From sequence record NC_019526.1: a DNA stretch of 64,000 nt. One strand, given 5' to 3'. Under the pieces are notes generated by a model. It did no database searches, was not told where the DNA came from, and saw only the letters and a program-made list of their open reading frames with translations. The position numbers were made by a program, and so were the translations under genes. Positions 1 to 63,883 of the stretch are shown here, piece by piece; position 1 is the stretch's first letter; each line of letters begins with the position of its first letter.

Positions 1-1549
1 TTAATGGTTGGATACTATCAACTACTATACTTGCATTTGGTTTAGATGTTGGTAATGATACTGTATTTTTATAAGTAACTTTATCTTTATACATACTACC
101 ATCATCACTGAATACATCAGTGTTTTGATATTTCCCGGTTGGGTCATTAATGTCAATGAATCGTGACTGACCACTATATATTCGGTTAATAGCTTTTGCT
201 TTTTGAACCAAATTACCCTGACTTAATGGTGCAATATCATAATCCTCACCATTGACAAATCGGTTTTGGGTGTAATATAATTGTGGAGCACGAGCTTTAA
301 TCTGTTCCAGAGTTTCAGCACTTTGTGCACGACTACTTTCGTACTGTAATGTAAATTTAACTTCAAGGATACTCTGTTCGTAGTTTGATTGTGCATTAGT
401 TCTGTACTGATATTTTATACTTTTATTTTGGATATCAGTTGTTTTAATACTGTATGTCATCCCATTACTAACACGATACCACGTTCTGAATGTTCCACGT
501 GGAACAACACCACTTCTTGAATCAGGAAACTTAATACTAATTTGATCATTATCACGCGTGGTTACAGCGAAAATAGTTTGTTTTTTTCTGTCTACACTGT
601 TATAAGCAACACTTTCCATTGCAGGAACTTTAGTCCATTTGGTTCTTACTAAACCGTCCTGATTAATTTCTTGTACCCAAACATCTGTTTCATTAATATT
701 ATTAACATTAATATCCTGTAAACGGTTTTCAATACTCACACTATAATCGAAGTCTTGTTTAGAAAGTGTGCCTTGTTTGAAATAAACGAAAAATCCAGTA
801 TTGATTGAATTAAAACCATTACCATCATTCTGATAAATGATATATTTTTGTTCTTGTGGTTCAGGATGGCGTTCATCGACACCAGAAGAGCTAATATCAG
901 GGTTTACTACTTCAAATTTCATACTTTCACCATTTACGTTTGCACTAAATGGGATAGCTGGTGATTGCATTTGATTAGTATTCATTTTATACAAATGAGT
1001 ACTCAACCCATTCACATTAGTTTTCTTAACTGGATTGCCAAACTGGTTGGTACTCACAAAAACATTGTTCATAACCAGAATAAAGTTCTCGTACCAGTTA
1101 GGATCAGTAGGGTCATTCCATCTAATCGTTTTATCTTTAAGTGATTTATTAAAACTATTTCGTACATCCTGGTTTGTTTTTATTTCAGTGACTTTAGCTA
1201 ATGCACGACCTGGATATGAACGTCTTGGAGCATAAGAGATCATTTTAGCAAGTTTAAGTACCGAAGCCCTGCGGGTTGCAGTATCCATAAAGTTTTCACG
1301 AGTGTTCATGTCCATACGAAATGCAAGGTTTTGACCAAGCATGGCAATCGTGTCCAGAATGAATAAAAATTCATCATTTGCAATCCAGTCATTGAATGTA
1401 TCAGGATAGTTAGTACTAAGATAGTCAACCATACTTTGACGTATACTATCGAAATCATATGAATTCAATGAAATTTGATAAAAACTTTCATATATTTGCG
1501 ACCAGTCTTCACCAGCGTATAAATTAGATTGTCTTCTTTGCTGAGACAT
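1..1549 (-). CDS. Baseplate wedge subunit (T4 gp6-like), 3' end runs off the window
   Basis: Open minus frame from ATG at 1549 (MSQQRRQSNLYAGEDWSQIYESF...YDFDSIRQSMVDYL...DFMDTATRRASVLKLAKMI), RBS AAGGA, TATAAATA late promoter at 1753-1760; N-terminus is typical of gp6/baseplate-J wedge proteins. Not in the ORF track because its stop is outside the window. Confidence 0.85.
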   Translation of the reverse strand, partial: MSQQRRQSNLYAGEDWSQIYESFYQISLNSYDFDSIRQSMVDYLSTNYPDTFNDWIANDEFLFILDTIAMLGQNLAFRMDMNTRENFMDTATRRASVLKLAKMISYAPRRSYPGRALAKVTEIKTNQDVRNSFNKSLKDKTIRWNDPTDPNWYENFILVMNNVFVSTNQFGNPVKKTNVNGLSTHLYKMNTNQMQSPAIPFSANVNGESMKFEVVNPDISSSGVDERHPEPQEQKYIIYQNDGNGFNSINTGFFVYFKQGTLSKQDFDYSVSIENRLQDINVNNINETDVWVQEINQDGLVRTKWTKVPAMESVAYNSVDRKKQTIFAVTTRDNDQISIKFPDSRSGVVPRGTFRTWYRVSNGMTYSIKTTDIQNKSIKYQYRTNAQSNYEQSILEVKFTLQYESSRAQSAETLEQIKARAPQLYYTQNRFVNGEDYDIAPLSQGNLVQKAKAINRIYSGQSRFIDINDPTGKYQNTDVFSDDGSMYKDKVTYKNTVSLPTSKPNASIVVDSIQPL

Positions 1550-1767
1550 ATATGTTATTCCTTTAAAATTATGTTGAATGTATTTTTAAAGTGCTGTATA
1601 AGTACTGAAATATGATTTTCATCATATCTAATTCTCAATAGTCATTCTTTATACACGTAATTATGTTTTCTAATGATTCATTATTACTTTGGTATTGTAA
1701 ATTGATTCATTTAACCATATAAAATACTATCCAGTACTATATTCTATGAAGATATTTATAAAATAAT

Positions 1768-1790
1768 AAAGGCTCCATATCGGAGCCTTT
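1768..1790 (-). terminator. Rho-independent terminator after the gp25-like gene
   Basis: AAAGGCTCC-ATATC-GGAGCCTTT inverted repeat with A/T tails. Confidence 0.75.
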
Positions 1791-1797
1791 AATGTTA

Positions 1798-2187
1798 TTA
1801 TGAAACAACATAAGATGACATTTTATCAGTGTTTCTGTTATCAAATACCATACGAAGAGTTTCAACTGAATTTAGAATTACATACTTCAGTTGTAATTCA
1901 ACTACATAACCGTAATCAATTTTTTCGGCTGCAATATTCAATAGTTCAACTCTTGGTTCTTCATACACAATTCTCCTACAGTCAGCTTCAATAAGATTGA
2001 GTGTGTTGTAGCTATCCAGTGAGAAGATTAAATCCCAACCAATAAACCCGTAGTTAGCATCAAATGCTCTCTCTCCTTTTCTGGTATTGAAGTGATTGAG
2101 AAGGTCTTGACGAATCAATTCTTCATTGTATAATGTTTTTGTTCTACCCTGTGATGGAGTAGAAAATCCTTTAAAAACAACAGCCAT
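1798..2187 (-). CDS. Baseplate wedge protein, gp25/GPW-like
   Basis: 129 aa, IRQDLLNHFNTRKGER...YGF and EPRV motifs of the gp25 family; baseplate context. Confidence 0.88.
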   Translation of the reverse strand: MAVVFKGFSTPSQGRTKTLYNEELIRQDLLNHFNTRKGERAFDANYGFIGWDLIFSLDSYNTLNLIEADCRRIVYEEPRVELLNIAAEKIDYGYVVELQLKYVILNSVETLRMVFDNRNTDKMSSYVVS

Positions 2188-2201
2188 ATATTAATTTCCT
2201 G

Positions 2202-2690
2202 TTATGCAGCAGATTCGACGATTTTAGCCATTTTATCTGCACGAGATGTAGTTTGACGATACCACAGTGAATCACGCATCTGACGTCCTGCTTCTTTATA
2301 ATCAGCACGACCTAAAGCAGCAAGTGCTTTTTTGAAGTTAAGCACTTTTGATTTACCCATTTGAAATACCATTAGCCATAGAACACGCTGTACGCTCTCT
2401 GGAGCAGTCATACCGAATTGTTGATAGATTGCCTTAGCATCATTGTATGCTTGCTTAGCGTCCTTCAGGAGCAGTGCATCAGCCTCTTTTTCAGTTAGTC
2501 CGTTTTTAAAGTTCTCGCCTTTTAAAACCAGATGACCATAACCAATAGTATCTAGACCTAAACTGTCTTTGTATACCCAGAATTTGTTATTTTTAAAATA
2601 ACCAAGTTTAGACTGATACGCGATAGTACCTTCAAACTCTTTGACTTCAGTAAAAAACTGTTTATCATCACTAGAAATAGACCAGCCCAT
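2202..2690 (-). CDS. Phage (GH24/T4-type) lysozyme, stand-alone
   Basis: EFEG...YKDSLGLDTIGYGHL and MVFQMG...SLWYRQTTSRA motifs; paralog of the C-terminal domain of 4475..7135. Confidence 0.9.
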   Translation of the reverse strand: MGWSISSDDKQFFTEVKEFEGTIAYQSKLGYFKNNKFWVYKDSLGLDTIGYGHLVLKGENFKNGLTEKEADALLLKDAKQAYNDAKAIYQQFGMTAPESVQRVLWLMVFQMGKSKVLNFKKALAALGRADYKEAGRQMRDSLWYRQTTSRADKMAKIVESAA

Positions 2691-2800
2691 ATTTTTACCT
2701 CTTTTACTTAAATTTACTTGACTTTGTATTTATATTAGAGTACATTTGTGTAGTAAAAATATTTGAATACTAAAAGTTGTTAATTATTTAAGGTGTTTAA

Positions 2801-3223
2801 ATGAGATATGATGTTATAAATGATGTTAGATCTGTTTCTGTGGTTAATAAAAAGTACTTCTATAAACCAAAAGGTAAAAACAATAAGAAGTATGAAACCA
2901 TGATTGATGAATACGGAACAGAAGTGATTTGTAGTGATGTACCACTTGATTTACCAGAATTATCATATGAATACAATTCTTCAATTGAATACAATGGTGT
3001 TGAATTTATTTATAGAACGTATATTCGTGATAATTATGAAATAGAAGATGATGTAATATACAGACGTATGACAGATTACACTGAAATGGATGAAGATGAG
3101 CTATTCCAGTACTCATTGGTATTCGAGAATGATAATTTTTCATTTCATGATGCAGTTAAAATACAAAAATGGTTAATTATGAGATATCGTGTTGTTAATA
3201 CCACGATTAATGTGGATTTATAA
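2801..3223 (+). CDS. Hypothetical protein
   Basis: 140-aa ORF, AAGGTG RBS, TTGACT-N17-TACATT promoter-like element upstream. Confidence 0.65.
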   Translation: MRYDVINDVRSVSVVNKKYFYKPKGKNNKKYETMIDEYGTEVICSDVPLDLPELSYEYNSSIEYNGVEFIYRTYIRDNYEIEDDVIYRRMTDYTEMDEDELFQYSLVFENDNFSFHDAVKIQKWLIMRYRVVNTTINVDL

Positions 3224-3234
3224 GAGAGATTATA

Positions 3235-3693: not shown

Positions 3694-3812
3694 CCCAGTA
3701 TTCATGCGGGTTGTAGGAATTAGGGACACCTTTTTGTGTGTTTTTTTGGTGCAGTGTCCCTAATTCAGACCAAGAACCCAGTATTCATGCGGGTTGTAGG
3801 AATTAGGGACAC
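3694..3812. repeat. Two identical 36-bp direct repeats with an inverted 13-bp half-copy between them
   Basis: CCCAGTATTCATGCGGGTTGTAGGAATTAGGGACAC at 3694-3729 and 3777-3812; GTGTCCCTAATTC at 3754-3766. Confidence 0.95.
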
Positions 3813-4415: not shown

Positions 4416-4444
4416 AGCGTTTTATGTGGTGTTACAGAAATAAC

Positions 4445-4467: not shown

Positions 4468-4474
4468 GTTATTA

Positions 4475-12570: not shown

Positions 12571-14715
12571 GTGTTAACATTTAAACGTATTACTATGCGA
12601 AATTTTTTCTCCTTTGGTAATGCACCACAAACAATTGATCTAGATAGTTCAGATATTACACTTGTTCTTGGTCAAAATAATGATGCAGTTATTGAAGGAA
12701 ATGATAGTTCAGGAAGAAGAAATGGTGTTGGTAAATCCGCTATTATTCAGGGAATTGTTTTTGGTTTGTACGGAAAAAGTATTGCAAATGAAATTAAAAT
12801 TCCCAATTTAGTGAATAAAATAAACGGAAAGAACTGTGAAGTAAAAATTGAATTTGAAAAAGATGGAATTTCTTATATTGTAGAACGTGGGCGTAATCCT
12901 GCGTTTTTTAATTTCATTAAACTCAGTGATGATCAAATAAATGACGAAAGTCGTGGTGAAAAGAAAGATACACAAGAAGATTTAAATGAAATTTTGGGTA
13001 TTTCACAATTTCTGTTTGAACACATTGTGGTGCTGAATGCTAACGTAGAACCTTTTCTTTCCATGTCTGCACAAAAACAACGTGATATGATCGAAGAACT
13101 TCTCGGTATTACACAATTAACCGAAAAAGCACAGCTTCTTAAAGATATGCAAAAGGAAACTAAGCGTTTAGCAGAGCAAGAACGTTTTAAAAATGAAACT
13201 ATACAAGCAAGTAATGAACGAATTCAAAAAAGTATAGAAACTCTTCAGGAACAGGCAAATAAATTCGAAATTGACAAGTCAAACCGAATCAGTGAACTAG
13301 AAAAACAGATTGAAACCTATTCTGTTCTAAATTTCGAAGAACTATATGAACAAGCTAATATAAAAGAAGAATCATTAATTCATAATGCTAAGAAATCCAA
13401 TTTAGAAAATCGCGTATCTGATTTAGTACTGAAATATGAATCATATAAACGAGATATTGAACATAATAAAGCAATACTAAAGATTAATATCGAACGCCTT
13501 CAACAAGTTGACATTGTAAGTGAATTAAAGAATCATGAAGAACTTGAATTGTGGAAACAACTTGAATCTATACTAAAAGAGAACATAACACAAAAGAATT
13601 ATAAAGAACAAAAAATAAATTTATTAAAAAGTACTTTACAAAGTTCTAAATCTTCTCTTGAATTGGAAAAAAACAAACTAGATGTGGTACTCAATAGCAA
13701 ATGCCCACTGTGTAAATCAAGTCTGGAGCATAATGAGCATAGTTCTGATATTAAATCAAAAATTCTGAAAACAATTACTGATATTGAGAACTCGATATTA
13801 ACTATTGAATATGATATTAGTATACTTCATGAAGAAGTTGATTCAATTGACGTGTTTGATATGCCTCATAAACCAGAAACTGTGTATAATACACTGACTG
13901 AAGCACAAATGCATGAGCATAAGTTACAGGAGTTAATTAAACAGTACGAAATTGATCAAATCAATATTTTTGAATCAGAATTAATGTCATCATATGAAGA
14001 ATTAAATTCTTTTGAACTAAAAGATGTACCAGATGCACTAACCAAGACTGAAGTTCGTGAACTGGAACTTGCTTATGATTCATTAAAACAACAATTACAA
14101 CGAGAATTTAGTACAGTAAACACATATATTAGTCAAATTAACACACTTCAGAATGAATCCATTGTTGTGGTTAATTATGACTCTTATAATGAACTGGATA
14201 AGCTACAAAATCATCAAGATTTTATGGTTAAACTTCTTCTCAATAAAGATTCATACTTGAGAAAGCGTATCATTGAACAAAATATTTCATTTTTAAACAA
14301 CAGACTTCAGTACTATATTGATATGTGTGGTTCAGAGCACAATGTTAAGTTCTTGACTGATTTGAGTGTTGAAATTGAAAAGAATGACCAGTACTTTGAC
14401 TATAAACAGCTTAGTCGCGGTGAACGTACTCGTGTTAATATCGCACTGTCTTGTGCCTTCAGGGATACATATGAATCATTATATCAAAATATCAATTTAA
14501 TTTGTTGTGATGAGGCATTAGAAACTGGCTTGGATGCTAGTGGTGTATTGAGAGCATGGATGATATTTCAGGACATGGCATCAATCAGAAATAAAAATGT
14601 CTTTGTTATTTCACACAGAGATGAACTTATTTCAAAAACCGAAAATATCATGAAAGTTACTAAAGAGGATGGATTCAGTACTGTTCAGTACTGTACATTA
14701 GACGATATATATTAA
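12571..14715 (+). CDS. gp46: Recombination ATPase subunit (gp46, SbcC/Rad50-like)
   Basis: Walker A NGVGKS, coiled coil with CPLC hook, LSRGE signature, Walker B CCDE, SH loop. Confidence 0.95.
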   Translation: MLTFKRITMRNFFSFGNAPQTIDLDSSDITLVLGQNNDAVIEGNDSSGRRNGVGKSAIIQGIVFGLYGKSIANEIKIPNLVNKINGKNCEVKIEFEKDGISYIVERGRNPAFFNFIKLSDDQINDESRGEKKDTQEDLNEILGISQFLFEHIVVLNANVEPFLSMSAQKQRDMIEELLGITQLTEKAQLLKDMQKETKRLAEQERFKNETIQASNERIQKSIETLQEQANKFEIDKSNRISELEKQIETYSVLNFEELYEQANIKEESLIHNAKKSNLENRVSDLVLKYESYKRDIEHNKAILKINIERLQQVDIVSELKNHEELELWKQLESILKENITQKNYKEQKINLLKSTLQSSKSSLELEKNKLDVVLNSKCPLCKSSLEHNEHSSDIKSKILKTITDIENSILTIEYDISILHEEVDSIDVFDMPHKPETVYNTLTEAQMHEHKLQELIKQYEIDQINIFESELMSSYEELNSFELKDVPDALTKTEVRELELAYDSLKQQLQREFSTVNTYISQINTLQNESIVVVNYDSYNELDKLQNHQDFMVKLLLNKDSYLRKRIIEQNISFLNNRLQYYIDMCGSEHNVKFLTDLSVEIEKNDQYFDYKQLSRGERTRVNIALSCAFRDTYESLYQNINLICCDEALETGLDASGVLRAWMIFQDMASIRNKNVFVISHRDELISKTENIMKVTKEDGFSTVQYCTLDDIY

Positions 14716-14746
14716 AAAAAGGGGAGCATATTAGCTCCCCTTTTTT
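14714..14746. terminator. Bidirectional terminator between convergent genes
   Basis: AAAAAAAGGGGAGC-ATATTA-GCTCCCCTTTTTT. Confidence 0.85.
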
Positions 14747-15762
14747 ATTATTGTCATAATTTCATTCAAAGATGTAGGTGATACGGTTTCGGTCCACCCA
14801 TCACCGAATAATTCTTTTGTTAAGTGTCTTGCTTTTATGGTTCTTTTTATTTCTTTTTCTATGTTAAATGCATCATTACAATTTTCATATACTTTGTGGT
14901 ATACAACATTCAATTTGTACTTACATTTATTTTTATATGAACCCATTCTGTGTTTGATATTCTTTGTTATACCGAATTTATAACCAACTATATTATTATA
15001 ATCATCAGATACTTCTAAAATGTATATACCTGAACTAAAATCAGAAGATTTATAACCATTTTTGTAACTAACAGAATTACACAAAGGACACCCTTTATCT
15101 CGCATAAAATTGTCATATGTCATAGACCATGTATAATTGCATTTACAAGTTAAAATGACTTTACTAAAAACACCATTAAAGTTCTTTTCATCTATTAATT
15201 CAAATTTAATGCCAGTTTCTTTGCTTTTAATTTTTAAATTCTCATTTAATTCATTTATACTGTATTTGTGAGTACCTGAACATTTCAAACAACCAATATT
15301 ATTACTGAAAAATGAGTCATAAGTGGTAGTATTCCATTCGTATGCTTCAGAATGTTTAGTATTGTCATTGCATTTTAGTTTTAAATATGTTTTTGTTTTA
15401 TTATATTCATCAAAACCGAGGAATTCCAGTGTCCCACCTCGTTTAATGCATTCATTTTCCACATTTTGAATTAAAATTTCAGGTGTTAACTTATTCAATG
15501 AAGGCTTTCTGAACTTTTTTGATTCTATATTTCTCAGATATCTATATAATTTGTTAATTCTGTAATTATTATAAGTTATATTATCATGTGTTATTGAAGT
15601 AAGTGTATTATTACCTAACCATTTTTCTTCAATAATGAATCCATTGAATTTTATATTAAATTTGGATAACCTTTTCGATAAATCGTTGAAATATTCCCAT
15701 GGAGTTCTGGAATTATAGTTAACGTGAACTAAAATAATATCATCTGGTAAAGATATTATCAT
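14731..15762 (-). CDS. Homing-endonuclease-like protein (Zn-ribbon repeats plus GIY-YIG/T5orf172-like domain)
   Basis: GCLKC and GCPLC repeats; C-terminal GIYI...KFGIT...E...FGDGWTET shared with 25787 and 46257. Confidence 0.7.
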   Translation of the reverse strand: MIISLPDDIILVHVNYNSRTPWEYFNDLSKRLSKFNIKFNGFIIEEKWLGNNTLTSITHDNITYNNYRINKLYRYLRNIESKKFRKPSLNKLTPEILIQNVENECIKRGGTLEFLGFDEYNKTKTYLKLKCNDNTKHSEAYEWNTTTYDSFFSNNIGCLKCSGTHKYSINELNENLKIKSKETGIKFELIDEKNFNGVFSKVILTCKCNYTWSMTYDNFMRDKGCPLCNSVSYKNGYKSSDFSSGIYILEVSDDYNNIVGYKFGITKNIKHRMGSYKNKCKYKLNVVYHKVYENCNDAFNIEKEIKRTIKARHLTKELFGDGWTETVSPTSLNEIMTIIKKGS

Positions 15763-16253: not shown

Positions 16254-16380
16254 GATATAATCTCTTATATTATATATCTAATAAATTTATTTACTTCAAT
16301 AAATACCTATGTAAATAATCTTTCTGTATAATGCATAATTCAATACATAATTTCTTGATACGTTAGATACGGAATAGCAA

Positions 16381-16412
16381 AATAGGTCAGTACTTTTCAG
16401 TACTGACCTATT
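16381..16412. terminator. Hairpin terminator downstream of the gp26-like gene and its extension
   Basis: AATAGGTCAGTACT-TTTC-AGTACTGACCTATT, 14-bp stem containing AGTACT in each arm. Confidence 0.8.
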
Positions 16413-16423
16413 TTTTTCTGATT

Positions 16424-24393: not shown

Positions 24394-24430
24394 TATTTTT
24401 AACGCATATTTTAACCACCTTTTTCAGTAC

Positions 24431-24445
24431 TGATAAATAACTTTA
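24431..24445 (+). promoter_or_regulatory. Strong late promoter of the major capsid gene
   Basis: TGATAAATAACTTTA; identical 15-mer on the minus strand at 37376-37390. Confidence 0.75.
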
Positions 24446-25786: not shown

Positions 25787-27013
25787 ATGATGACATTTGA
25801 TGAAGTGCATGAACAATTTATCAAAATTGGTAATAAGAGAGAACCATCTTATTTTAAAAAAATAATTTTAAAAGAAATTGAAATGTATAATTTAAATTAT
25901 GAATTTATTGGGTTTAATATTAATTCTATTATTGAATTTAAAGGAGCAAGAACGAAGTTAGTACTAAAATGTCCAGTACATGGTATTTTTTCTGATTGTA
26001 CTTTCAATAATTTTACAAAATCTAATGCACAGGGTCGCCGCTGTCCTGAATGTGCTAAAGAATCTAAAGCTTTGAAACAACGTTGTTGTACTGAAGAATT
26101 TATTGAAAAATGTAAAAGAGTACATAATGATTTTTATGATTACAGTAAGACTATATACGGAAAAAATGCTCATGAACACGTTGTTGTTACCTGTAAATTA
26201 CCAAATCATGGAGATTTCAAAATACGTCCTTCATGTCATTATAATAAAGCACAAGGTTGTCCTATATGTGCAAAAGAAAAAAGAAAAATTGATGAACAGG
26301 ATATAATAACCAGATTAAATGAAATACATAATAATCACTTTGGATTTGATAAATTCGTATATAATGGATCGGAAAATAAATCTATAGTAACTTGTTTAGT
26401 GCATAATAAAAATTATGAAGTTAAAGTTGGGAGTTTACTTTATGATCATGGCTGTGCATTGTGTTCAACAAGAGCAAAACACACAAAAGAATCATTCATA
26501 TCTATGGCAGTACTGAAACATGGTAATGTATATGATTACAGTAAAGTACAATATGTAGATTTATTCACTAAAGTTGAAGTTGTTTGTAATAAAGATAATC
26601 ATGGTTCATTCTTTATTACTCCAACAAGTCATATACATGGTTTAAAACCAAATGCATGTCCAAAATGTTCAAAATATGGATTTCAACCAAATAAACCTGG
26701 ATTCTTTTATATTCAAAAAATAACTAATTCATGTAAAGAAGTTATATCTTATAAGTACGGTATTACATGTGATTTAATAAGACGATTGAATGAGCATAAC
26801 AGAAATTCTATATATGTGCATGAATATATTTTTCATGAATACTTTGATAATGGGTATGAAGCAATTGAACTTGAAAAGCTTATAAAAAAATCAATTCCTT
26901 CTTGGTATTTGAATTCTAATGAATTTGGTGATGGTTTCACTGAAACATACGATCCTAAATACCACAAAGATGTTATTAATATAATCAAAAAACAACAAAG
27001 GAGAAATCCATGA
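25787..27013 (+). CDS. Homing-endonuclease-like protein (DUF723-like Zn repeats plus GIY-YIG/T5orf172-like domain)
   Basis: Four CxxH...GCPxC units; C-terminal FFYI...KYGIT...FGDGFTET. Confidence 0.75.
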   Translation: MMTFDEVHEQFIKIGNKREPSYFKKIILKEIEMYNLNYEFIGFNINSIIEFKGARTKLVLKCPVHGIFSDCTFNNFTKSNAQGRRCPECAKESKALKQRCCTEEFIEKCKRVHNDFYDYSKTIYGKNAHEHVVVTCKLPNHGDFKIRPSCHYNKAQGCPICAKEKRKIDEQDIITRLNEIHNNHFGFDKFVYNGSENKSIVTCLVHNKNYEVKVGSLLYDHGCALCSTRAKHTKESFISMAVLKHGNVYDYSKVQYVDLFTKVEVVCNKDNHGSFFITPTSHIHGLKPNACPKCSKYGFQPNKPGFFYIQKITNSCKEVISYKYGITCDLIRRLNEHNRNSIYVHEYIFHEYFDNGYEAIELEKLIKKSIPSWYLNSNEFGDGFTETYDPKYHKDVINIIKKQQRRNP

Positions 27014-30091: not shown

Positions 30092-30385
30092 ATGGCTAAA
30101 CATGAAGACAAAGTACAAATTGAAGATCTAAATAATGAACAACGCAAACGTCTTAGTGACGGTCTGAACAATGCAGTAGTTCAACTTACTTTTATTGATG
30201 ATACCAAAGCCTCACTGAAAGATTTTATTGATTCACTGGCTGACGAACTCGGTATCGATGCGAGTGATATCAAACAAGCCGCCAATACTATCTATAAACA
30301 AAACTTCTTCGATAAATCCAGTAAGCATGATAAAATCGAAACTATTCTAAGTATTACTGGTAATCTTCCACAAGCCGACGATTAA
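30092..30385 (+). CDS. dsDNA-binding protein, T4 DsbA-like
   Basis: 97 aa, SLKDFIDSLADELGIDASDIKQAANTIYKQNF pattern resembles the DsbA/GapR family. Confidence 0.65.
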   Translation: MAKHEDKVQIEDLNNEQRKRLSDGLNNAVVQLTFIDDTKASLKDFIDSLADELGIDASDIKQAANTIYKQNFFDKSSKHDKIETILSITGNLPQADD

Positions 30386-34755: not shown

Positions 34756-34962
34756 ATGCCAATTTATACTTATCGTTGTAGTACCGAAAATTGTACTAAT
34801 GTAGAAGATAAAATTGTTAAATATTCAGAACGTGAAAATCCAAAAGACTGTAAAGTGTGTGGTTCTGAAAAATCAATGCATTTTGAAAATTTCACACCGG
34901 GTGACAAAGGTGCAGCTTTTAACTACAAAGGAAATTGGTTGAATACCACAGGGAGATATTAA
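34756..34962 (+). CDS. FmdB-like zinc-ribbon protein
   Basis: MPIYTYRC...C...CKVCGS...FNYKGNW. Confidence 0.82.
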   Translation: MPIYTYRCSTENCTNVEDKIVKYSERENPKDCKVCGSEKSMHFENFTPGDKGAAFNYKGNWLNTTGRY

Positions 34963-39036: not shown

Positions 39037-42373
<3,337 letters not shown>

Positions 42374-46256: not shown

Positions 46257-47405
46257 ATGGCTAAAAAAAGAACTCAAGAAGAAGCAAATAAATTAGTTTT
46301 TGATGCCTGTGAACGCAAAAACTACACATTTAAATCTTTTGTATATAATAACAGAAATACTAGAATTGATGTACATTGTAATGTATGTGGGTATGAATGG
46401 GATATATTGTTTGAAAATTTAACAAGAAATCCTTGTGGTTGTCCAGATTGTGCTGGATTGGTTAAACGAACACAAGAACAAGCAGAAAATGAAGTACGTC
46501 AAAAATGTAATGAAAGAAATTATAAATTTGGAAAGTTTGTTTATGTAAATAATCAAACAAAAATACCGTTAATTTGCCATTGTGGATACGAATGGGTTTC
46601 ATGTTCTTTTTCTAAATTTGTACATGGTAACAGGGGTTGTCCACGTTGCTCTAAAAAAATACAATTAACTCAAGAAGAAGCAACCAAAAAAGTGGATGCA
46701 AAATGTAAAGAGAATAATTACTTATATAAGGAATTCTCGTATATTGGAGTTGATGATACGAGACTTTTTCTTATTTGTCATTGTGGATATGATTGGAATT
46801 GTTCATTTGATAAATTTGTTAATTCAGGAACAGGCTGTCCTAAATGTGGTGGTAGATTGCAATTAACTCAAGAAGAAGCCGAAGAACGAGTATTATCTAA
46901 ATGCAAAGAGCATAATTATACATATAAACCATTTTGTTATCTAACCAATGAAACAAAAATATCTTTGATTTGTCATTGTGGATATGAATGGGATTGTAGG
47001 TATTCATTGTTTGTAATGCCAAACGGAACTGGTTGTCCAAAATGTTCTCATAATGATGGACAGTTATATTCATATATACATTCAATAACAGATGATGACG
47101 GTAATTTAATTTCTGTAAAATATGGGATAGAAACCACAATCAATAGTAGGAATAAAAGTCAAAATAAATTATCTAACTATAATATTTCAGTACTTAATAC
47201 TTACAAATATATTACTGTTGAACAGTGTAAAAATGCAGAAAAAGAATGTATTAAATTATTCCAAAAAGAAAACAAAGAACTTTTTGGAAGAAAGGGTTAT
47301 ATAACTAAAGAAGAAATGAGGGATGGTTGGACGGAAACCACATCTGTTTCTAATATTGAAAAAATCATTTCTATCTATGAAAAATGGGGTGGAATTAAAC
47401 AATAA
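46257..47405 (+). CDS. Homing-endonuclease-like protein (four ~66-aa Zn-ribbon repeats plus GIY-YIG/T5orf172-like domain)
   Basis: TQEEA...CHCGYEW...GCPxC x4; KYGI...RDGWTET; start moved to ATG at 46257. Confidence 0.75.
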   Translation: MAKKRTQEEANKLVFDACERKNYTFKSFVYNNRNTRIDVHCNVCGYEWDILFENLTRNPCGCPDCAGLVKRTQEQAENEVRQKCNERNYKFGKFVYVNNQTKIPLICHCGYEWVSCSFSKFVHGNRGCPRCSKKIQLTQEEATKKVDAKCKENNYLYKEFSYIGVDDTRLFLICHCGYDWNCSFDKFVNSGTGCPKCGGRLQLTQEEAEERVLSKCKEHNYTYKPFCYLTNETKISLICHCGYEWDCRYSLFVMPNGTGCPKCSHNDGQLYSYIHSITDDDGNLISVKYGIETTINSRNKSQNKLSNYNISVLNTYKYITVEQCKNAEKECIKLFQKENKELFGRKGYITKEEMRDGWTETTSVSNIEKIISIYEKWGGIKQ

Positions 47406-47869
47406 TGGCAAAACCTTGGCATTGGATAATTAAGGACGATAAGAGTAAACTTCTTGATTTGATTACATATTTCAGTACTGAAATTGATGAAGCAAAGAAG
47501 GAAGTTAAAAAGGTTGGTTCTGTTGAGAAATTAGCACAAGACTTACCTGGCTGGCATGAAACACGTTTGTCCCAATTACAAGAACTTGAAGCAGTACTGG
47601 AAACACTTGAAATAGAAATGAAACAAATACAGGCAGAAAAATTTAAATACTATCTGGAATCATATCGACGTCAGCTATCCAGTTCAGACTGTAAGAAGTA
47701 TGTTGAGGGTGATAAAGACGTGTGTGATTTGGCTGAAGTTATTAACGAAGTTGCTTTTCTACGAAATCAATACACCAGTATTATTAAATCATTAGAAATG
47801 AAAGCATTCCAATTAAACAATATTGTTAAATTGCGATGTGCTGGTTTGGAAGACATTAGACTAGATTAG
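47405..47869 (+). CDS. uvsY: Recombination mediator, UvsY-like
   Basis: YLESYRRQLSSSDCKKYVEGD...IIKSLEMKAFQLNNIVKL. Confidence 0.82.
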   Translation: MAKPWHWIIKDDKSKLLDLITYFSTEIDEAKKEVKKVGSVEKLAQDLPGWHETRLSQLQELEAVLETLEIEMKQIQAEKFKYYLESYRRQLSSSDCKKYVEGDKDVCDLAEVINEVAFLRNQYTSIIKSLEMKAFQLNNIVKLRCAGLEDIRLD

Positions 47870-51285: not shown

Positions 51286-52082
51286 TGTCTGATAAAAAAG
51301 AATTACAAATTCAGGATGTATTACATCATATTGATATTGCAGATTATAAGTACTATGATACACTTAGTGATGAAGAAAAGAAAAGTTTCACGCCATATAC
51401 TGTTTTGAGATGGGTAAGTGCGTTGGACGATTCGTTATTGGTTACTTATAACGCAAAAGAGATTGAAAATGTATTCGGTAAATGGAAGGGTGGTGGTAAA
51501 GAAGCATTAAACGAGCTTGTATTAGAACTCCAGAAAGATGGAGTTGGGGTTTTGAATGTATCAAAATACTGCCATACCGAACCTTATGATTGGCGAATCA
51601 AATTTTCAGTTAAAGACAAAAATTCCAGCGAAAAATTGATTTCCACACTGAAGGATTTTGGAATTAAATCATATGAGATTCTCCAACTGGAAAATAGTGA
51701 TGTACTAAAATATCAATTAATCTTTTTAAATGATATGGTTAACGATGGATTTTGGGAAATGAAAGACCATCCTGATTTAGTGTATCAATTGATGTGTTCG
51801 GTTCAGGATATGGTTGGTGCTGAACCTAAAGTACATAACTGGATCCCGTTTACTAAAGGTTTGAAGAATGTTAGTACTGAATTATTCAATATCATTAAAC
51901 AAACCCAACCCGAATTAACACGAGAAAATATAAACGAGCTTGAATATAAAATTCTCCTTTTATCTTACTCTAAAGAATCTTTTAAAGAACTACTTGATGA
52001 TTTTGGATATCAGGAGAGTGAAGTTAAAAAATTGTTAAAAACATTTAAAGAAGAATGTTCGAAATATGGCAAAGAGATCTAG
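51285..52082 (+). CDS. Hypothetical protein; N-terminus weakly reminiscent of a clamp-loader small subunit
   Basis: YDTLSDEEKKSFTPYTVLRWVS; functional call is weak. Confidence 0.65.
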   Translation: MSDKKELQIQDVLHHIDIADYKYYDTLSDEEKKSFTPYTVLRWVSALDDSLLVTYNAKEIENVFGKWKGGGKEALNELVLELQKDGVGVLNVSKYCHTEPYDWRIKFSVKDKNSSEKLISTLKDFGIKSYEILQLENSDVLKYQLIFLNDMVNDGFWEMKDHPDLVYQLMCSVQDMVGAEPKVHNWIPFTKGLKNVSTELFNIIKQTQPELTRENINELEYKILLLSYSKESFKELLDDFGYQESEVKKLLKTFKEECSKYGKEI

Positions 52083-52812
52083 TACAGGGGGAATAAAAAC
52101 CCCTATCAAGAAAATTAAAAAAGAAGAATATGTATGTTATTTCTGTGATAAAAAATTTAAAAGAGAAAATACTATACTAACGCATAAATGTATTAAACGT
52201 GACCGATATAATGATCGAGAAAGTCGTTTAATGCGAGAAGCATTAAGAATATATCTTTTGTTTATGAAAATAAATCATTTACCACTAAAGAAAGATGTTG
52301 AACCACTAATGTATTTTATCAAATCTTTGTATTTTAATGACTTCTATGATTTCGCTAATTACATTCTAAATAATGATATACTTGAAAAAGAAAGATTTTT
52401 GAATCACATTATGACTAGTGGTATGTCAGTGCAGAAATGGACTACCCATGCAGTACTTGAAGAGTGGGTTCTTCATGTATTAAAATATGAACATCCAGAA
52501 CGTGGTGTAGAACGTTCTATTATGGCAATAGTCGAATGGTCTGAATTGACGTCAAATGAATGGACTACATTTTTTGATAATGTTTCTCCTGCTCGTTTTA
52601 TTGCATGGGTAGAAAGTGGTAAAATATCTCCATGGTTATTATGGACTGTTCCACCGGAAGTGCTTAGAAAAATAACAGACCGACTTAGTGATTCTGAGCT
52701 TGAATATATAGTCAAATATATTGATCCTACTTATTATCAAATAAAAAGTATAAATCCTTATCAAGTATCAGTGCAAAAATTAAAAACTATATTACAAGAT
52801 TCGGGATTTTAA
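52066..52812 (+). CDS. Hypothetical protein with an N-terminal C2H2/C2HC-type zinc finger
   Basis: YVCYFCDKKFKRENTILTHKC. Confidence 0.72.
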   Translation: MAKRSSTGGIKTPIKKIKKEEYVCYFCDKKFKRENTILTHKCIKRDRYNDRESRLMREALRIYLLFMKINHLPLKKDVEPLMYFIKSLYFNDFYDFANYILNNDILEKERFLNHIMTSGMSVQKWTTHAVLEEWVLHVLKYEHPERGVERSIMAIVEWSELTSNEWTTFFDNVSPARFIAWVESGKISPWLLWTVPPEVLRKITDRLSDSELEYIVKYIDPTYYQIKSINPYQVSVQKLKTILQDSGF

Positions 52813-59250: not shown

Positions 59251-59289
59251 AATAAATAATTGAAAGATCTTTTTACAAAAGGAATTAAA

Positions 59290-60261
59290 ATGGATATTCA
59301 ACAAACATCACAAGAATTACAAAAATTTGCTGATTCTCAGGGAATGAATATTGATGTTTCTACTGTACTTGATAATATGGATGCTGGTGATTTCGTGGAA
59401 TTGAATTCGGCTATCGACTCTAACAATAATCAAGAAATTTTTAAAATTCTTCAAAAATATAAAGCACGTATGAGTGAAAGTTTTGAATATTTTAGTCCAA
59501 CATATGTACTTAAATACGTAACCGAAAATTCAAAACTAAAAGAAATTGATAATTATAGTATTAAAGAATTAAAAGAAGCGTATTCAAAATTCAGTACATA
59601 TGGTGATATTTCAGAATTTAGTACTCAGGAATTAAAAGCATTAGTGTATGAAGATATAACACAGAATGCTACACAGCTTAATGCGTTAAAAACTAGTAAT
59701 ATTGCACAACAAAATCTACAACAGCAACAACAACAAATTAATCCACAGACACAGGCTAAAGTTAAACAAGCAGAATTGCAAAAAGGTACGGGTAATATGA
59801 AAGTATCTGTTCCTGGTCAACAATCTGGTACAGATGAAATTGAACCCCTTGTTGGTATTGATGTTGGACAAACACCACAACAGACATTGGTTGTTACTAA
59901 AAGTGGTTCTAAACCAAATCAGGTTAATATATTTGGTCTAGATGACGTCACCCCAGTTCAGGAATCAAGAAAACTAATGGATGACATTGATAAGATCTGC
60001 ACAGAAGAAAAATCTGTACAAGAGATTAATGCAGAAACTAAAAATGTTGCTCAGCCAGCACCTGAACAAAGTGGAACGCCATCGCCAGTTACTTATACTG
60101 CTCCTGGTATGGGTGAGTTTATTCATTCAGTACAGGACGTTCCATTTGAAGATGATTTCAGTGGAGAAGAAAGCCCATTAGGAAATTCTAAATTTGAACA
60201 GAATGATGAAATTGTTAACGATATAATTGATTTATGTAATCGAATGGATAATAGAAAATGA
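59290..60261 (+). CDS. Probable internal head protein
   Basis: Gln-rich/acidic, MSES, VTEN and VQES motifs, late promoter ATAAATA at 59252; start at ATG 59290. Confidence 0.65.
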   Translation: MDIQQTSQELQKFADSQGMNIDVSTVLDNMDAGDFVELNSAIDSNNNQEIFKILQKYKARMSESFEYFSPTYVLKYVTENSKLKEIDNYSIKELKEAYSKFSTYGDISEFSTQELKALVYEDITQNATQLNALKTSNIAQQNLQQQQQQINPQTQAKVKQAELQKGTGNMKVSVPGQQSGTDEIEPLVGIDVGQTPQQTLVVTKSGSKPNQVNIFGLDDVTPVQESRKLMDDIDKICTEEKSVQEINAETKNVAQPAPEQSGTPSPVTYTAPGMGEFIHSVQDVPFEDDFSGEESPLGNSKFEQNDEIVNDIIDLCNRMDNRK

Positions 60262-60452
60262 GATCTATAAAAACCGACAATGGTTATAGTATTATCCTTA
60301 GTAATGAAGAGTACTCATTATATAGAAAAATTAAAGCTAGAAAAAAAATTCACGAAGAATCTCTTCCTGAATATTATCAAGAACTCGCCAATAAACTGGT
60401 ATCAAGGGGTGTTCTTGATAAAACTGAAGATAATATATATACAGTAAAATAA
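60258..60452 (+). CDS. Hypothetical protein
   Basis: 64 aa, coupled; ELANKLVSRGVL. Confidence 0.7.
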   Translation: MRSIKTDNGYSIILSNEEYSLYRKIKARKKIHEESLPEYYQELANKLVSRGVLDKTEDNIYTVK

Positions 60453-60476
60453 TACAATGTAATTAAAGGAAGTTAT

Positions 60477-61130
60477 ATGAGTTATTATTCTGATGATTAT
60501 GAACAAAATAAGAAGGCTAAATCAGAAATTTCTGATTTACTTACTGACTTGTATGATATTGGTTTTTATGATAAAAATGATATCCCACCACCGGTAAGCA
60601 CAGCACCTGATTATGGTTATGATTATATTACAGAAGGTGTACAAGGTACTTATTCACTGGATGAAAATGGTATTCCAGTTAATGTAGTACAACCCACTAT
60701 CCCAGAACAGTACTATACTGAACCTGTTATTCAAAAACCAAAAAATACTAAAAAATGGGATTTAGTTGAAGATCACTATCCAGGTACTAAAAGTACTAAA
60801 GTCTATAGTATTAAATGTAATTCAAATGACCAAATTATTATGAATAACATTTTAATGCACGAAGCCGCTTTAACTTTAGTAAATCTTTTAAATGAAGGTA
60901 GAATGTTAACTGATCCAAAAATTCTTGGTATAATCAGCAGTGGTATTCAATTTACTTCAGTTATGAATGAGGTCATAAAAGTATCAAAAGAACGTCTTGT
61001 GGTACTAAATGAAGCTCGTTATGATGATGCAAAAGAATTGGATGTAAAAATTGCCGAAAAGAAAAATGAAGCATATAAACTGAAAAAACGTGTACTGGAT
61101 TTTCTAAAAACTGAAGGCTACATTAAATAG
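60477..61130 (+). CDS. Hypothetical protein
   Basis: 217 aa, AAGGAAG RBS. Confidence 0.72.
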   Translation: MSYYSDDYEQNKKAKSEISDLLTDLYDIGFYDKNDIPPPVSTAPDYGYDYITEGVQGTYSLDENGIPVNVVQPTIPEQYYTEPVIQKPKNTKKWDLVEDHYPGTKSTKVYSIKCNSNDQIIMNNILMHEAALTLVNLLNEGRMLTDPKILGIISSGIQFTSVMNEVIKVSKERLVVLNEARYDDAKELDVKIAEKKNEAYKLKKRVLDFLKTEGYIK

Positions 61131-61147
61131 TACTTCAAGGGAATGAA

Positions 61148-62881
61148 ATGAAAAAATATCTGAAAAATTTAGATACAGAAACAGAAAATCTATTTAATGA
61201 AATTCGTTCATTACTAAGTAACAAAAATAGTAAATCATGGCATACCTCAATAAATGCTTCTGGAAGGGAGCATTTAAAAAACGCGGTACTCAGAGTCTAT
61301 CCAAGTAGTGATTTTTTATTATCAGAAGCATTAAAACTGATTATCAATCAAGAAGAACCACCGTATGCAGTATGTGGTAGAAAATGTAAGTATTTTAATG
61401 GTCAGTATGATAGATATTGTTCATTGGGTGTCAAACCCAATAAAAACACTTATTGTGAGAAGTGCAATAATCACTGGCGAGAAAAGAAAAACAAATCCAC
61501 AAAAGAAAACTGTCTAAATCAGTACAATGTTGAACACCCTTTTCAGCGAAATGATGTGAAAACAAAAGTACATGAAACTAAAATACGAAAATACGGTACT
61601 AATTATAATAAAATAATTTCAAACAAATCATTCAGTACTTATTATAATAAAACTGGATATTCATGTCCATTGAGTAATCCAGATATACAACAAAAAATTA
61701 AAGAAACTAATATTAAAAATTATGGATATGAAAATCCCGGTTCATCTCCATTAATTGTACAAAAAAGAAAAAATACCCAGAAGAAATTATATGGTCATGA
61801 ACATTCTATGCAGAATGGTGATATAAAACTAAAGGTATTGATTAAATCTGCCACACAGAGAATGGATAGTATAAATTCAAAACTTGAATTTACTAATTTT
61901 ATTCCTTTGTTTGATATTAGTGATTTAATTGGTTTGGATACATATAACAAAATGCCATACTGGTGTAATACACATGGTTTATTTTATTCATGTAGTAATT
62001 ATAAAATTATATGTAATGAATGCACTCCCGTTCATATAAGCACACAACACAAAGAGATATTAAATTTTATAGAAAATCTTGGTATTGAATGTGTAACGAA
62101 TACACGCTCTGTTTTAAAAAGTACTATGGAATTGGATATTTTTATACCTGACTTGAATGTTGCAATAGAAATTAATGGTATGTACTGGCATAGTACTGAA
62201 TACAAAGAACGACTGTATCATCAAAACAAAATGCTGGAATGTAAAGAACATGGCATTCACTTAATACAGATATGGGAAGATGAATGGAATACCAAACAAG
62301 ATTTGGTTAAATTTCGTTTGATGAATGTATTAAAATGCTCCAGTACTATATATGCAAGAAAATGTAAAATAAAAGAAATCAATAAAAAAGAATGTGATAA
62401 TTTTATTAATACATACCATATCCAAGGTTCTAGTTCATCATCTATTAGAATTGGTTTATATTACGAAAATGAATTATATGCAGTTATGACATTTGGAAAA
62501 TCCAGATTTGATAAAACTGTTCAGTATGAATTGATACGATATTGTTCAAAAAGTACAGTCGTTGGCGGTGCATCTAAATTATTAAAGTACTTTGAGAAGA
62601 AATACAAACCAGTGTCGTTGATTTCTTATGCAGATGCGTGTTGGAGTACGGGTGATTTATATATTAAACTTGGTTTTACATATAATGGATTAACTGAACC
62701 TGGTTATTTTTATTACAAATCAAGTACTGGTAGAATTTCAAGGCATCAATGTCAAAAGAAAAAACTAGTCAATCAGGGATATGATGAAAATTTATCAGAA
62801 TATCAAATATGTACCACTGTACTTAAATATAACAAAATATTTGATTGTGGTAATTTTAAATTCACTAAATATTACATATAA
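61148..62881 (+). CDS. Homing-endonuclease-like protein (KYGxxN repeats, PD-(D/E)xK/Vsr-like nuclease, C-terminal ARKC domain)
   Basis: ELDIFIPDLNVAIEINGMYWH...LIQIWEDEW, IYARKCKI, ISYADACWSTG. Confidence 0.75.
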   Translation: MKKYLKNLDTETENLFNEIRSLLSNKNSKSWHTSINASGREHLKNAVLRVYPSSDFLLSEALKLIINQEEPPYAVCGRKCKYFNGQYDRYCSLGVKPNKNTYCEKCNNHWREKKNKSTKENCLNQYNVEHPFQRNDVKTKVHETKIRKYGTNYNKIISNKSFSTYYNKTGYSCPLSNPDIQQKIKETNIKNYGYENPGSSPLIVQKRKNTQKKLYGHEHSMQNGDIKLKVLIKSATQRMDSINSKLEFTNFIPLFDISDLIGLDTYNKMPYWCNTHGLFYSCSNYKIICNECTPVHISTQHKEILNFIENLGIECVTNTRSVLKSTMELDIFIPDLNVAIEINGMYWHSTEYKERLYHQNKMLECKEHGIHLIQIWEDEWNTKQDLVKFRLMNVLKCSSTIYARKCKIKEINKKECDNFINTYHIQGSSSSSIRIGLYYENELYAVMTFGKSRFDKTVQYELIRYCSKSTVVGGASKLLKYFEKKYKPVSLISYADACWSTGDLYIKLGFTYNGLTEPGYFYYKSSTGRISRHQCQKKKLVNQGYDENLSEYQICTTVLKYNKIFDCGNFKFTKYYI

Positions 62882-62900
62882 CTTATAAGGAATATATAAA

Positions 62901-63524
62901 ATGTCTGACATTAAAAAAATCATGGAAGCTGAAAATCGTGTAGAAGCACTGAAGTTCATGCAGATTAATGAAAGTAATATTGAAAAACTGGAAGTGGTTC
63001 TCGCAATCAAATCTGGTATTGCCGATAAACTACAACGTGCTTCTGAGCAGTTGATGAACTACAGCGTTGACGTTCTCGGTCCAATTGTTGATCGTATTAA
63101 AGCAGAAGAAGGTATTGAAGTGGCCGAAGAATTTCAGTCCAGAGTTAAAAACATCCTTCAACATGCAGCAGATGTAGTTATGGATGCTAAAGACCAGATC
63201 ACTAACGAAACTCTTAAACTTACTGGTGATGTAGCTGATAATCCAGATGTGGCGGATATCGGTATTGATGATGATCTAACTGTTGATGAGGAAACCCCAA
63301 CTTTTGATATGGAATCTGATGCTTCCTTTGATGATATTGAAGAACCTGTACCGGAAGATCGTGCAATGAAAGAATCTGTACAATATACCCAAGTTGGTAT
63401 CAAAATGGAAAGTACTAAAGGTACTATTGGTACAAAATATTTCAGTACTCATAAAGAAGCTGAAAAATGGCTCAAAGAAAATGAATCTAAAGTCAAAAAA
63501 GTACTTGGGTTCGAGAAAAAATAA
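62901..63524 (+). CDS. Acidic probable head protein
   Basis: INES, MKES and ENES motifs; capsid-like codon bias. Confidence 0.68.
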   Translation: MSDIKKIMEAENRVEALKFMQINESNIEKLEVVLAIKSGIADKLQRASEQLMNYSVDVLGPIVDRIKAEEGIEVAEEFQSRVKNILQHAADVVMDAKDQITNETLKLTGDVADNPDVADIGIDDDLTVDEETPTFDMESDASFDDIEEPVPEDRAMKESVQYTQVGIKMESTKGTIGTKYFSTHKEAEKWLKENESKVKKVLGFEKK

Positions 63525-63532
63525 GGTTAATT

Positions 63533-63883
63533 ATGAAATTTCGTGATATTGTAAAAATCACAGAAGATGCACCACCAAAAGATATTCGCAATATGATCAC
63601 CAGTATTGCATTATCACTAGTTGCATCTGGTAGGGAAGAGGTTGGTATTCAGTCATTGGTTAATGAAATTAAGAAAAGGACTGGTATTGATGTTCCTTAT
63701 AATGTGATGATGGATATTTTAAATTCGTTGCCATTTGTTCAGGATGCAAATTCTGATAGAGTACAATTTTCAGGAACTGATACCAGTACTGACTTTAAGC
63801 AACCTAATTCAGAAGAAAGTTCTGAACAAAAAGTACAAGATATGGCTGGTAAAGCAGCCACCGACAGTATGAAATCACTATAA
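63533..63883 (+). CDS. Small probable head protein
   Basis: MKFRDIVKITED N-terminus. Confidence 0.68.
   Translation: MKFRDIVKITEDAPPKDIRNMITSIALSLVASGREEVGIQSLVNEIKKRTGIDVPYNVMMDILNSLPFVQDANSDRVQFSGTDTSTDFKQPNSEESSEQKVQDMAGKAATDSMKSL

Follow-up and report, generated by a model that had tools for sequence, protein, structure and literature searches.

The stretch analyzed here, a window of 64,000 nucleotides from sequence record NC_019526.1, is identical to positions 62001-126000 of the Klebsiella jumbo myovirus vB_KleM_RaK2 (NC_019526, 345,809 bp), hereafter RaK2. Coding sequence makes up 93.7% of it, with genes for the baseplate, the head, DNA polymerase, terminase, recombination, and primase-helicase functions. 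Scattered through these genes and the spacers between them is a single palindromic hexamer, AGTACT, often extended to the octamer CAGTACTG, which is the subject of this report. The original prediction, made by eye from the same sequence, had estimated 115-120 copies of AGTACT and at least 27 of CAGTACTG; we count 127 (the first at 998-1003, the last at 63785-63790) and 28, respectively. Base composition predicts 21.6 and 0.6, in line with the earlier figures of about 22 and under 1, and a first-order model likewise predicts 0.6 copies of CAGTACTG. Dinucleotide-preserving shuffles of the window (n = 100) yield 15.1 ± 3.9 AGTACT sites with a maximum of 25, and none reaches 127. The over-representation is real and very strong: AGTACT ranks first among all 4096 hexamers in the window (z 28.8), followed by CAGTAC and GTACTG.

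The excess extends over the whole RaK2 genome, where 937 AGTACT sites are found against 79 expected and 247 copies of CAGTACTG against 3. The density is one site per 369 bp (mean spacing within the window is 498 bp), with 12 to 69 sites per 10-kb bin and no bin without sites. AGTACT is the top 6-mer and CAGTACTG the top 8-mer in the window and in the genome alike, the top 10-mers of the genome are TTCAGTACTG, ATTCAGTACT, CAGTACTGAA, and TCAGTACTGA, and all of the top 6-, 8-, and 10-mers are pieces of ATTCAGTACTGAAT. Genome-wide enrichment climbs from 2.8x for GTAC through 5.5x for AGTAC and 11.9x for AGTACT to 83x for CAGTACTG and 208x for TCAGTACTGA. A fourth-order Markov model predicts 119 AGTACT sites in the window, so that the excess is nested across word lengths and not tied to a single one. 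Other hexamers built on GTAC are not equally enriched, the NGTACT variants reaching only 2-4x. We found no mention of the word in the literature consulted on these phages, and to our knowledge its enrichment has not been described for them.

Phages are expected to purge short palindromes, and the original prediction had pointed out that an enriched one reverses this expectation. The reversal is borne out, since RaK2 carries AGTACT at about 12x while strongly avoiding CTTAAG (1 versus 79 expected), GCATGC (0 versus 30), and TGGCCA (4 versus 37); CGTACG does not occur at all. Within the window the avoided words are CTTAAG (0 versus 15.8), ACATGT (6 versus 33.8), and TCTAGA (3 versus 14.7). The non-palindromic pair GACATC and GATGTC (0 and 2 copies in the genome versus 66 and 75 expected) looks like the target of a Type IIS or Type III enzyme. 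This strong avoidance of other words indicates that RaK2 is under restriction pressure, a trend against which AGTACT runs.

Does the signal reside in the DNA or in the encoded proteins? Judged against the RefSeq gene table, 74 of the window sites lie in frame 0 (AGT-ACT, Ser-Thr), 35 in frame 2 (xxA-GTA-CTx), and 11 in frame 1, while six are intergenic (0.74 expected, an 8x excess) and one runs across a gene end, so that all three frames and the spacers are represented, as had been claimed. Shuffling synonymous codons within genes leaves 37.8 ± 5.4 sites compared with the 120 observed (z 15.4), the three frames being enriched 2.9-, 4.6-, and 3.5-fold. A dicodon shuffle that preserves the protein, the first two bases of codons, and all dinucleotides has very little freedom left, yet it produces 82.6 ± 5.6 sites and the observed count still exceeds it (z 6.7). 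The proteins bear the imprint of the word. Ser-Thr tops the list of over-represented dipeptides (142 versus 93.6 expected) while Thr-Ser is as expected (96), and Val-Leu is raised (131 versus 94.7) while Leu-Val is not (95). Of the 142 Ser-Thr pairs, 74 are written AGT-ACT, where codon usage predicts 24.5. Among window genes of at least 600 nt, 39 of 42 contain a site. The signal thus acts at the DNA level, as the original prediction had argued against amino-acid bias, and it distorts the RaK2 proteome. The AGU codon that the word forces into genes is read by a tRNA-Ser(GCU) of RaK2; ARAGORN also detects a tRNA-Met(CAU), absent from the RefSeq feature table.

The preferences for bases flanking AGTACT are graded and mirror-symmetric, giving the full form (T)(T)C-AGTACT-G(A)(A) with TTCAGTACTGAA as its best version. 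C at -1 and G at +1 are favored 3.1x, G at -1 is reduced to 0.4x, and the T favored at -2 and -3 has its counterpart in A at +2 and +3. The palindrome reaches about 12 bp and rarely goes beyond, only 16 of the 937 sites extending by at least 4 bp on each side. The half-site CAGTA without a following C is barely enriched (1-1.7x), and the table of xGTACy combinations is near-multiplicative, with approximately 1.8-fold synergy for A...T. The preference for C, or for anything other than G, at -1 is common to all eight enriched named phages, the metagenomic contig L011 favoring A instead, and the share of sites that form the full CAGTACTG differs between genera (5-24%). Symmetric half-sites contributing independently would be the signature expected of a two-fold-symmetric reader of double-stranded DNA.

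Spacing was tested on two RaK2 stretches outside the early region, and in both the sites are more evenly distributed than a Poisson process allows. The coefficient of variation (CV) is 0.895 for 0-215 kb, versus 0.996 ± 0.042 under Poisson (p 0.004), and 0.815 for 250-320 kb (p 0.0015); for the window taken by itself, the CV of 0.93 does not reach significance. The longest two stretches free of sites (3.9 and 3.4 kb) fall in tail-spike genes that resemble genes of other phages and bacteria. Three paralogous free-standing endonuclease genes of the window sit among core genes, next to gp46/gp49, the capsid gene, and uvsX/uvsY; their products are assigned to PHROG 'endonuclease'/HNH and have a treble-clef zinc finger. 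Together these genes hold only 3 AGTACT sites in 3.4 kb, which is what recent arrival as mobile genes would predict.

How widely is the word shared? Using counts from syntenic 25-50-kb pieces of related phages, AGTACT is the top hexamer in 121Q (76 versus 12.7 expected), EJP2 (71 versus 9.4), GAP32 (58 versus 6.8), CBB (54 versus 7.7), pEa_SNUABM_12 (56 versus 7.6), XbC2 (98 versus 7.4), and both fENko-Kae01 and SE_PL (38 versus 7), as well as in eight metagenomic jumbo contigs of 355-378 kb (8-15x). The enrichment is therefore common to every enterobacterial Rak2-like jumbo phage tested, all myoviruses of about 350 kb. It is absent from PA5oct (1 versus 7.1), from Vibrio phage 2.275.O (5 versus 3.9), and from approximately 35 environmental relatives with 60-65% capsid identity. 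One metagenomic genome, IMGVR_UViG_3300031417_000002 (L011, L108), is enriched 3.5x around its capsid gene and 7.9x around its methyltransferase gene.

Codon alignments of 15 orthologous genes (14.6 kb) show how the sites evolve. At 66-71% nucleotide identity, 6-15 of 39 RaK2 sites are kept in place, a retention of 15-41%; overall the figure is 52 of 183 (28%), compared with 13-18% for all hexamers, so that AGTACT is retained about twice as well. Of 46 retained Ser-Thr pairs, 39 are written AGTACT. Turnover is nonetheless extensive: of 109 site columns, 51 occur in a single genome and only four in all eight. RaK2 and K64-1, which diverge by 0.87% over 50 kb, have 89 sites in common, and each has 3 that the other lacks. 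The picture is one of many individually weak sites at mutation-selection balance or at a fixation-bias equilibrium. A weak per-site force acting on the DNA maintains the density of AGTACT in all frames and in non-coding DNA, raises the Ser-Thr and Val-Leu dipeptides, and evens out the spacing of the sites.

Several sites occupy regulatory or structural positions (Table 1). The original prediction had placed AGTACT in both arms of a hairpin near 16381 and beside a capsid promoter at 24425, and both placements were recovered. The hairpin between gp49 and gp26 has a dG of -21.7 kcal/mol and a z of -7.45, none of 200 shuffles is as stable, and it looks like an intrinsic terminator, possibly a bidirectional one. 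Upstream of the major capsid gene, CAGTACTG directly abuts an ATAAATA box; since ATAAATA is the late-promoter consensus for this phage group (PMC5259590), the box probably represents a T4-type late-promoter-like element of that gene.

The early region of RaK2, at 220-250 kb of the genome, is the peak of AGTACT density. Its spacers (8.5 kb) contain 100 sites versus 3.3 expected and its small open reading frames (ORFs; 12.9 kb) contain 52 versus 2.4. Pairs of sites at 20-bp spacing number 19 versus 2.5 expected and correspond to 17 strong early promoters of sigma70 type, built as AAA-AGTACTTGAC(A)-N9-(C)CAGTACTG-TATAAT-G, in which two boxes lie 20 bp apart and the downstream box before TATAAT may also be given as CCAGTACTG. 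One of the early promoters lies at 227479-227515 of the genome. AGTACT also forms the center of hairpins in 5' untranslated regions, for example GGGAATCAGTACTGATTCCC. Read from the sequence, AGTACT in RaK2 is wired into early promoters, hairpins, terminator stems, and a late-promoter-like box. The boxes resemble LexA half-sites (TACTG/CAGTA), but by inspection against the LexA/SOS-box consensus the promoter sequences form no SOS boxes. At approximately 225,590-226,160, a 1.5-kb ORF-free stretch of the early region contains three copies of GAGAATGATAATGATTCTCATT, a sequence that we take to be very like the Fur-box consensus; each copy adjoins an AGTACT site.

What reads this word? The reading we favor, although we hold it tentatively, is that AGTACT is a hyper-iterated palindromic word recognized by a two-fold-symmetric DNA-binding factor of this phage clade. 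The word would be the recognition site of a reader of double-stranded DNA, most likely a dimer, whether DNA-binding protein or enzyme, that the clade itself encodes, and each half-site would add roughly independent binding energy. Because the word is some 45 times denser per base than in a 50-kb sample of E. coli K-12, which contains 3 AGTACT sites, such a reader would load along the whole phage DNA and could provide a distributed 'self' mark for genome organization, protection, replication or recombination, or packaging. As the word is wired into RaK2 regulatory DNA, the reader would probably modulate early transcription as well. More speculatively, AGTACT may be a genome-identity word that lets a clade-specific phage factor both tell the 346 kb of phage DNA from the chromosome and control early promoters. 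We propose GAGTACTC as a control duplex beside TTCAGTACTGAA.

Several points weigh against this interpretation. The same symmetry would also be expected from a type-II-like methyltransferase, a type II topoisomerase, or a nuclease. Pfam and PHROG scans of 36 RaK2 proteins (26 from the window, small or of unassigned function; seven from the sigma-factor neighborhood and other loci; three products of DNA-modification genes) detected no DNA binder that is both sequence-specific and restricted to the clade. In phage CBB, the published RpoD-like promoters are without AGTACT boxes, so that the use in promoters is a co-option specific to the lineage and cannot account for the enrichment of the clade as a whole; the word is used in one published CBB terminator (n = 1). 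Sites are not depleted of substitutions between RaK2 and K64-1 (6 versus 4.9 expected), so that short-term purifying selection between the two is not detectable. Finally, the per-site force is weak and could equally be fixation bias.

Three proteins of the window had been put forward as binders, and the scans lend support to none of them. The Zn-ribbon protein and the acidic, possibly DsbA-like ORF099 offer no clue to DNA specificity. The C2H2-like ORF122 is present in all members of the clade, but an orthologue (34% identity) also occurs in Vibrio phage 2.275.O, which is not enriched; ORF122 may be a replication accessory factor.

A different reader would be a phage methyltransferase, as the original prediction had suggested, with AGTACT as its target, for example for N6-adenine methylation by the Dam-family enzyme gp447. 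Enrichment would then serve self-marking, the timing of early promoters through the difference between fully methylated and newly replicated DNA, or control of packaging as at P1 pac. We regard this as unlikely. Type II methyltransferases recognize short palindromes, HIP1, the highly iterated palindrome of cyanobacteria, has a methylated CGATCG core, and the AGTACT boxes sit at promoter positions where methylation could matter. In all of the enriched lineages examined for gp447, its gene is conserved and syntenic beside one for a cytidyltransferase, but this co-occurrence is confined to one clade and its instances are not independent. A profile search of viral contigs found gp447 homologues in approximately 65 unrelated non-jumbo contigs (37-48% identity, as similar as that of GAP32), none of which is clearly enriched in AGTACT (0-4.6x expectation, on small counts); a single-protein search of viral contigs matched only RaK2 itself. 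Possession of gp447 is accordingly rejected as a sufficient cause. Several of the non-jumbo contigs, AT-rich sequences from IMG/VR (L118, L123, L173, L182, and others), have no AGTACT site where 5-6 are expected, and in this they behave opposite to the jumbo clade. The identity of gp447 to its RaK2 counterpart is 98% in K64-1 and only 69% in Muenster, KP13-7, and phiKp_21. Across the capsid region these three genomes share about 99% identity with RaK2, which suggests that the gp447 allele has been swapped.

The other modification genes fare no better. The RaK2 paper reports restriction patterns pointing to modified DNA, a point in favor of methylation, and it also reports CpG methylation. The C5 methyltransferase gp194 is closest to DNMT3, and as AGTACT contains no CpG it is rejected as the cognate enzyme. 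Among the tblastn matches listed for gp194 within the clade are Alcyoneusvirus and Asteriusvirus genomes and some Salmonella relatives, and no Mimasvirus or Eneladusvirus record is among them. The Mom-like ORF149 is missing at the syntenic frd-dda position of 121Q, the only part of that genome searched for it, although 121Q is equally enriched, and it too was rejected. The target of Mu Mom does not fit AGTACT. Above all, methylation alone gives no advantage to having more sites, and a reader would still be required. None of the three DNA-modification genes can be tied to AGTACT. What is supported of the original prediction is the DNA-level signal, the reversal of palindrome avoidance, and the analogy with HIP1, while its methyltransferase and its named binders are left unsupported.

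As a sub-case of the symmetric clade-encoded reader that we favor, AGTACT could be the sequence at which a phage enzyme of DNA metabolism prefers to act. Candidates would be a T4-type topoisomerase II (gp39/gp52), whose 4-bp staggered cut would fit A/GTAC/T, or a recombination or repair nuclease. The two-fold symmetry around a 4-bp GTAC core suits such an enzyme, even spacing would serve the topological or recombinational management of a 346-kb genome, and the phage encodes gp39/gp52, gp46/47, endonuclease VII, UvsX, UvsY, and UvsW. Nothing, however, ties these enzymes to AGTACT. Known topoisomerase II consensus sequences are weak, and homologues of the enzymes are expected in non-enriched relatives too. 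We therefore think this version improbable.

Could the word have no function at all? Biased repair or gene conversion resembling very-short-patch repair, or a mutation bias of the replisome, might drive near-matches into AGTACT. The weakness of the per-site force and the equality of gains and losses between RaK2 and K64-1 would agree with such a process, as would the nested rise from GTAC to AGTACT, and slow amelioration predicts that the longest site-free gaps lie in horizontally exchanged tail-spike genes, as they do. But the one-mismatch neighbors of AGTACT are not depleted (0.55-4x), with AATACT/AGTATT, the deamination product, at 1.42x, AGCACT/AGTGCT at 1.98x, and the NGTACT variants in excess, and there is therefore no sign of a very-short-patch-type drain, which we reject. 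A mutational drive would not be expected to space sites more evenly than Poisson or to fix their positions in 17 promoters, hairpin centers, and terminators. No Vsr-like gene was noticed, though the search was not exhaustive. An explanation without function is a little more doubtful still than an enzyme site.

It is very unlikely that the reader is instead a protein of the Enterobacterales host, which the phage would recruit or titrate. The enrichment is limited to phages of Enterobacterales or phages classed with them, and the obvious case, the nucleoid-occlusion factor SlmA, has a site, GTGAGTACTCAC, that shares the AGTACT core. SlmA requires G1, T2, a purine at 3, A4, and G5 in each half-site (PMC3020112), while the base favored before AGTACT in RaK2 is C, G being disfavored there, and G at -3 is not favored. 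With incompatible flanks and a single SlmA-like site in 346 kb, recruitment of SlmA was rejected. The strength of the flank preference also differs between genera. We know of no other host factor with AGTACT specificity.

We give equally little credence to a signal that acts in RNA or as a structural block, with AGUACU seeding hairpins or binding an RNA-binding protein or nuclease. The word does lie at the center or in the arms of hairpins, the CBB terminator mentioned above uses it, and a palindrome is present in the transcripts of both strands. Most sites, however, are isolated within coding sequence, palindromes extended by at least 4 bp on each side are as rare as noted above, and an RNA reader would need no mirror-symmetric flanks. 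The idea that codon usage, amino-acid composition, codon-pair preference, or a dispersed repeat family generates the AGTACT excess as a side effect can be dismissed: AGT and ACT are favored codons, the phage has a tRNA for AGU, and 74 of the 127 window sites are Ser-Thr codon pairs, but both shuffles, the equal enrichment of frames 1 and 2 with frame 0, the intergenic excess (8x in the window, 30x in the early region), and the unremarkable Thr-Ser and Leu-Val dipeptides exclude a coding artifact, and the flanks of the 127 window sites, all distinct and with any two sharing at most 17 of 24 bases, exclude a repeat or miniature mobile element.

Two further genes of the window merit a remark. ORF116 directly follows uvsX and the endonuclease gene inserted there, and it scores above the curated cut-off for PF11056, the family of UvsY recombination mediators (E 1e-5), while the RaK2 genome paper states that no UvsY homologue is detectable. 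The large terminase has 889 aa in RaK2 and matches the proteins of EJP2 and fENko-Kae01 over its full length, but those of 121Q, GAP32, CBB, and SE_PL only over residues ~418-889. Its N-terminal 400 aa may be a fusion or insert; in GAP32 and CBB, a distinct ORF of about 235 aa immediately upstream is also annotated as 'terminase' and is probably the counterpart of RaK2 ORF110.

Table 1. Features of the window and of other RaK2 loci (window coordinates unless RaK2 is indicated).
Feature	Position	Strand	Details
AGTACT array	998..63790	none	127 sites, of which 28 full CAGTACTG
CAGTACTG sites 1-7	4264, 6673, 11045, 12336, 14676, 14686, 16398		
CAGTACTG sites 8-14	22810, 24425, 25337, 26508, 29230, 37091, 37946		
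CAGTACTG sites 15-21	38911, 41058, 43361, 44831, 44873, 45171, 47473		
CAGTACTG sites 22-28	47592, 47952, 48536, 50524, 50611, 54686, 63784		
Intergenic AGTACT	1601..1606		RefSeq gene table
Intergenic AGTACT (CCAGTACT)	1733..1738		RefSeq gene table
Tandem pair CAGTACTG-TT-CAGTACTG	14676..14693		10-bp spacing; within 3' end of gp46 recombination-nuclease gene
Hairpin AAAATAGGTCAGTACT-TTTC-AGTACTGACCTATTTT	16379..16414		perfect 16-bp stem, then T-run; between gp49 and gp26
CAGTACTG fused to ATAAATA late-promoter-like box	24425..24439	+	50 bp upstream of capsid gene start 24489
AGTACT between RefSeq genes	60310..60315		inside unannotated 64-aa ORF 60258-60452
AGTACT over ORF133 stop codon	61129..61134		upstream of hef homing-endonuclease gene
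HNH-type endonuclease gene (paralogous)	14731-15762	-	
HNH-type endonuclease gene (paralogous)	25787-27013	+	
HNH-type endonuclease gene (paralogous)	46257-47405	+	
ORF099, possible DsbA-like protein	30092-30385		acidic, pI 4.7; weak 'transcriptional regulator' PHROG match
Zn-ribbon protein	34756-34962		Pfam/PHROG scans
Large terminase	39704-42373	+	
ORF116, UvsY family	47405-47869	+	
ORF122, C2H2-like	52066-52812	+	basic, CxxC-x12-HxC finger; replication module
tRNA-Ser(GCU), tRNA-Met(CAU) region	RaK2 178,529 and 178,885 (L005 18529-18617, 18885-18962)		ARAGORN
gp447, Dam-family methyltransferase	RaK2 280980-281498		PF05869, NPPY motif

Why should such a word matter? Phages are expected to rid themselves of short palindromes, and a palindrome at one per 370 bp across therapeutic and model jumbo phages therefore points to an unrecognized DNA-reading activity in a clade that is in wide use (RaK2, K64-1, 121Q, PBECO4, GAP32, CBB). 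In practical terms, ScaI and RsaI would cut the genomes of the clade into small pieces unless the sites are modified, AGTACT is a cheap diagnostic of the clade in metagenomes, recoding and synthetic-genome work on these phages should respect the word, and the early promoters that contain the motif offer compact and strong parts. Cells are known to carry iterated words, among them Chi, the uptake sequences, KOPS (FtsK-orienting polar sequences), and HIP1, and each has led or may lead to DNA-handling machinery. If the genome-identity reading is true, AGTACT would be a viral counterpart of Chi, the uptake sequences, or HIP1.

The closest parallel is HIP1 (GCGATCGC), with which the original prediction had compared the word. 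Like AGTACT, HIP1 is a short palindrome found roughly once per 0.4-1.4 kb in all frames and in spacers, is clade-wide, turns over at individual sites yet is kept above chance, is embedded in functional elements, and has an unsettled function; the analogy holds for density, for distribution over frames and spacers, and for clade conservation with site turnover. The RaK2 word is nevertheless an analogue of HIP1 and not a member, being a different, AT-rich word carried by an enterobacterial phage, with no cognate methyltransferase shown, and it goes beyond HIP1 in its even spacing and its fixed promoter positions. Chi (GCTGGTGG) and KOPS are likewise distributed, over-represented 'self' words with many weakly selected copies, each read by a DNA-processing machine. 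They differ in being asymmetric and strand-oriented, whereas AGTACT is its own reverse complement, has no polarity, and is not enriched as a half-site alone. The DNA uptake sequences (DUS) of Neisseria and the uptake signal sequences (USS) of Haemophilus also mark 'own' DNA at about one per kb and shape the encoded peptides, and they often form inverted pairs in terminator stems, as AGTACT does at window 16379-16414; however, they are non-palindromic words of 9-12 nt read by a competence receptor, and a lytic phage has no uptake process. The GATC signals of Dam (SeqA and MutH in E. coli, pac in P1) share a short palindrome whose density and clustering are informative, but although RaK2 encodes a Dam-family enzyme, its GATC count is below expectation (777 versus 1036). 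The SlmA site, finally, shares with the RaK2 word its AGTACT core and its dimer-type symmetry and parts from it in the flanks, those required by SlmA being the ones that RaK2 disfavors.

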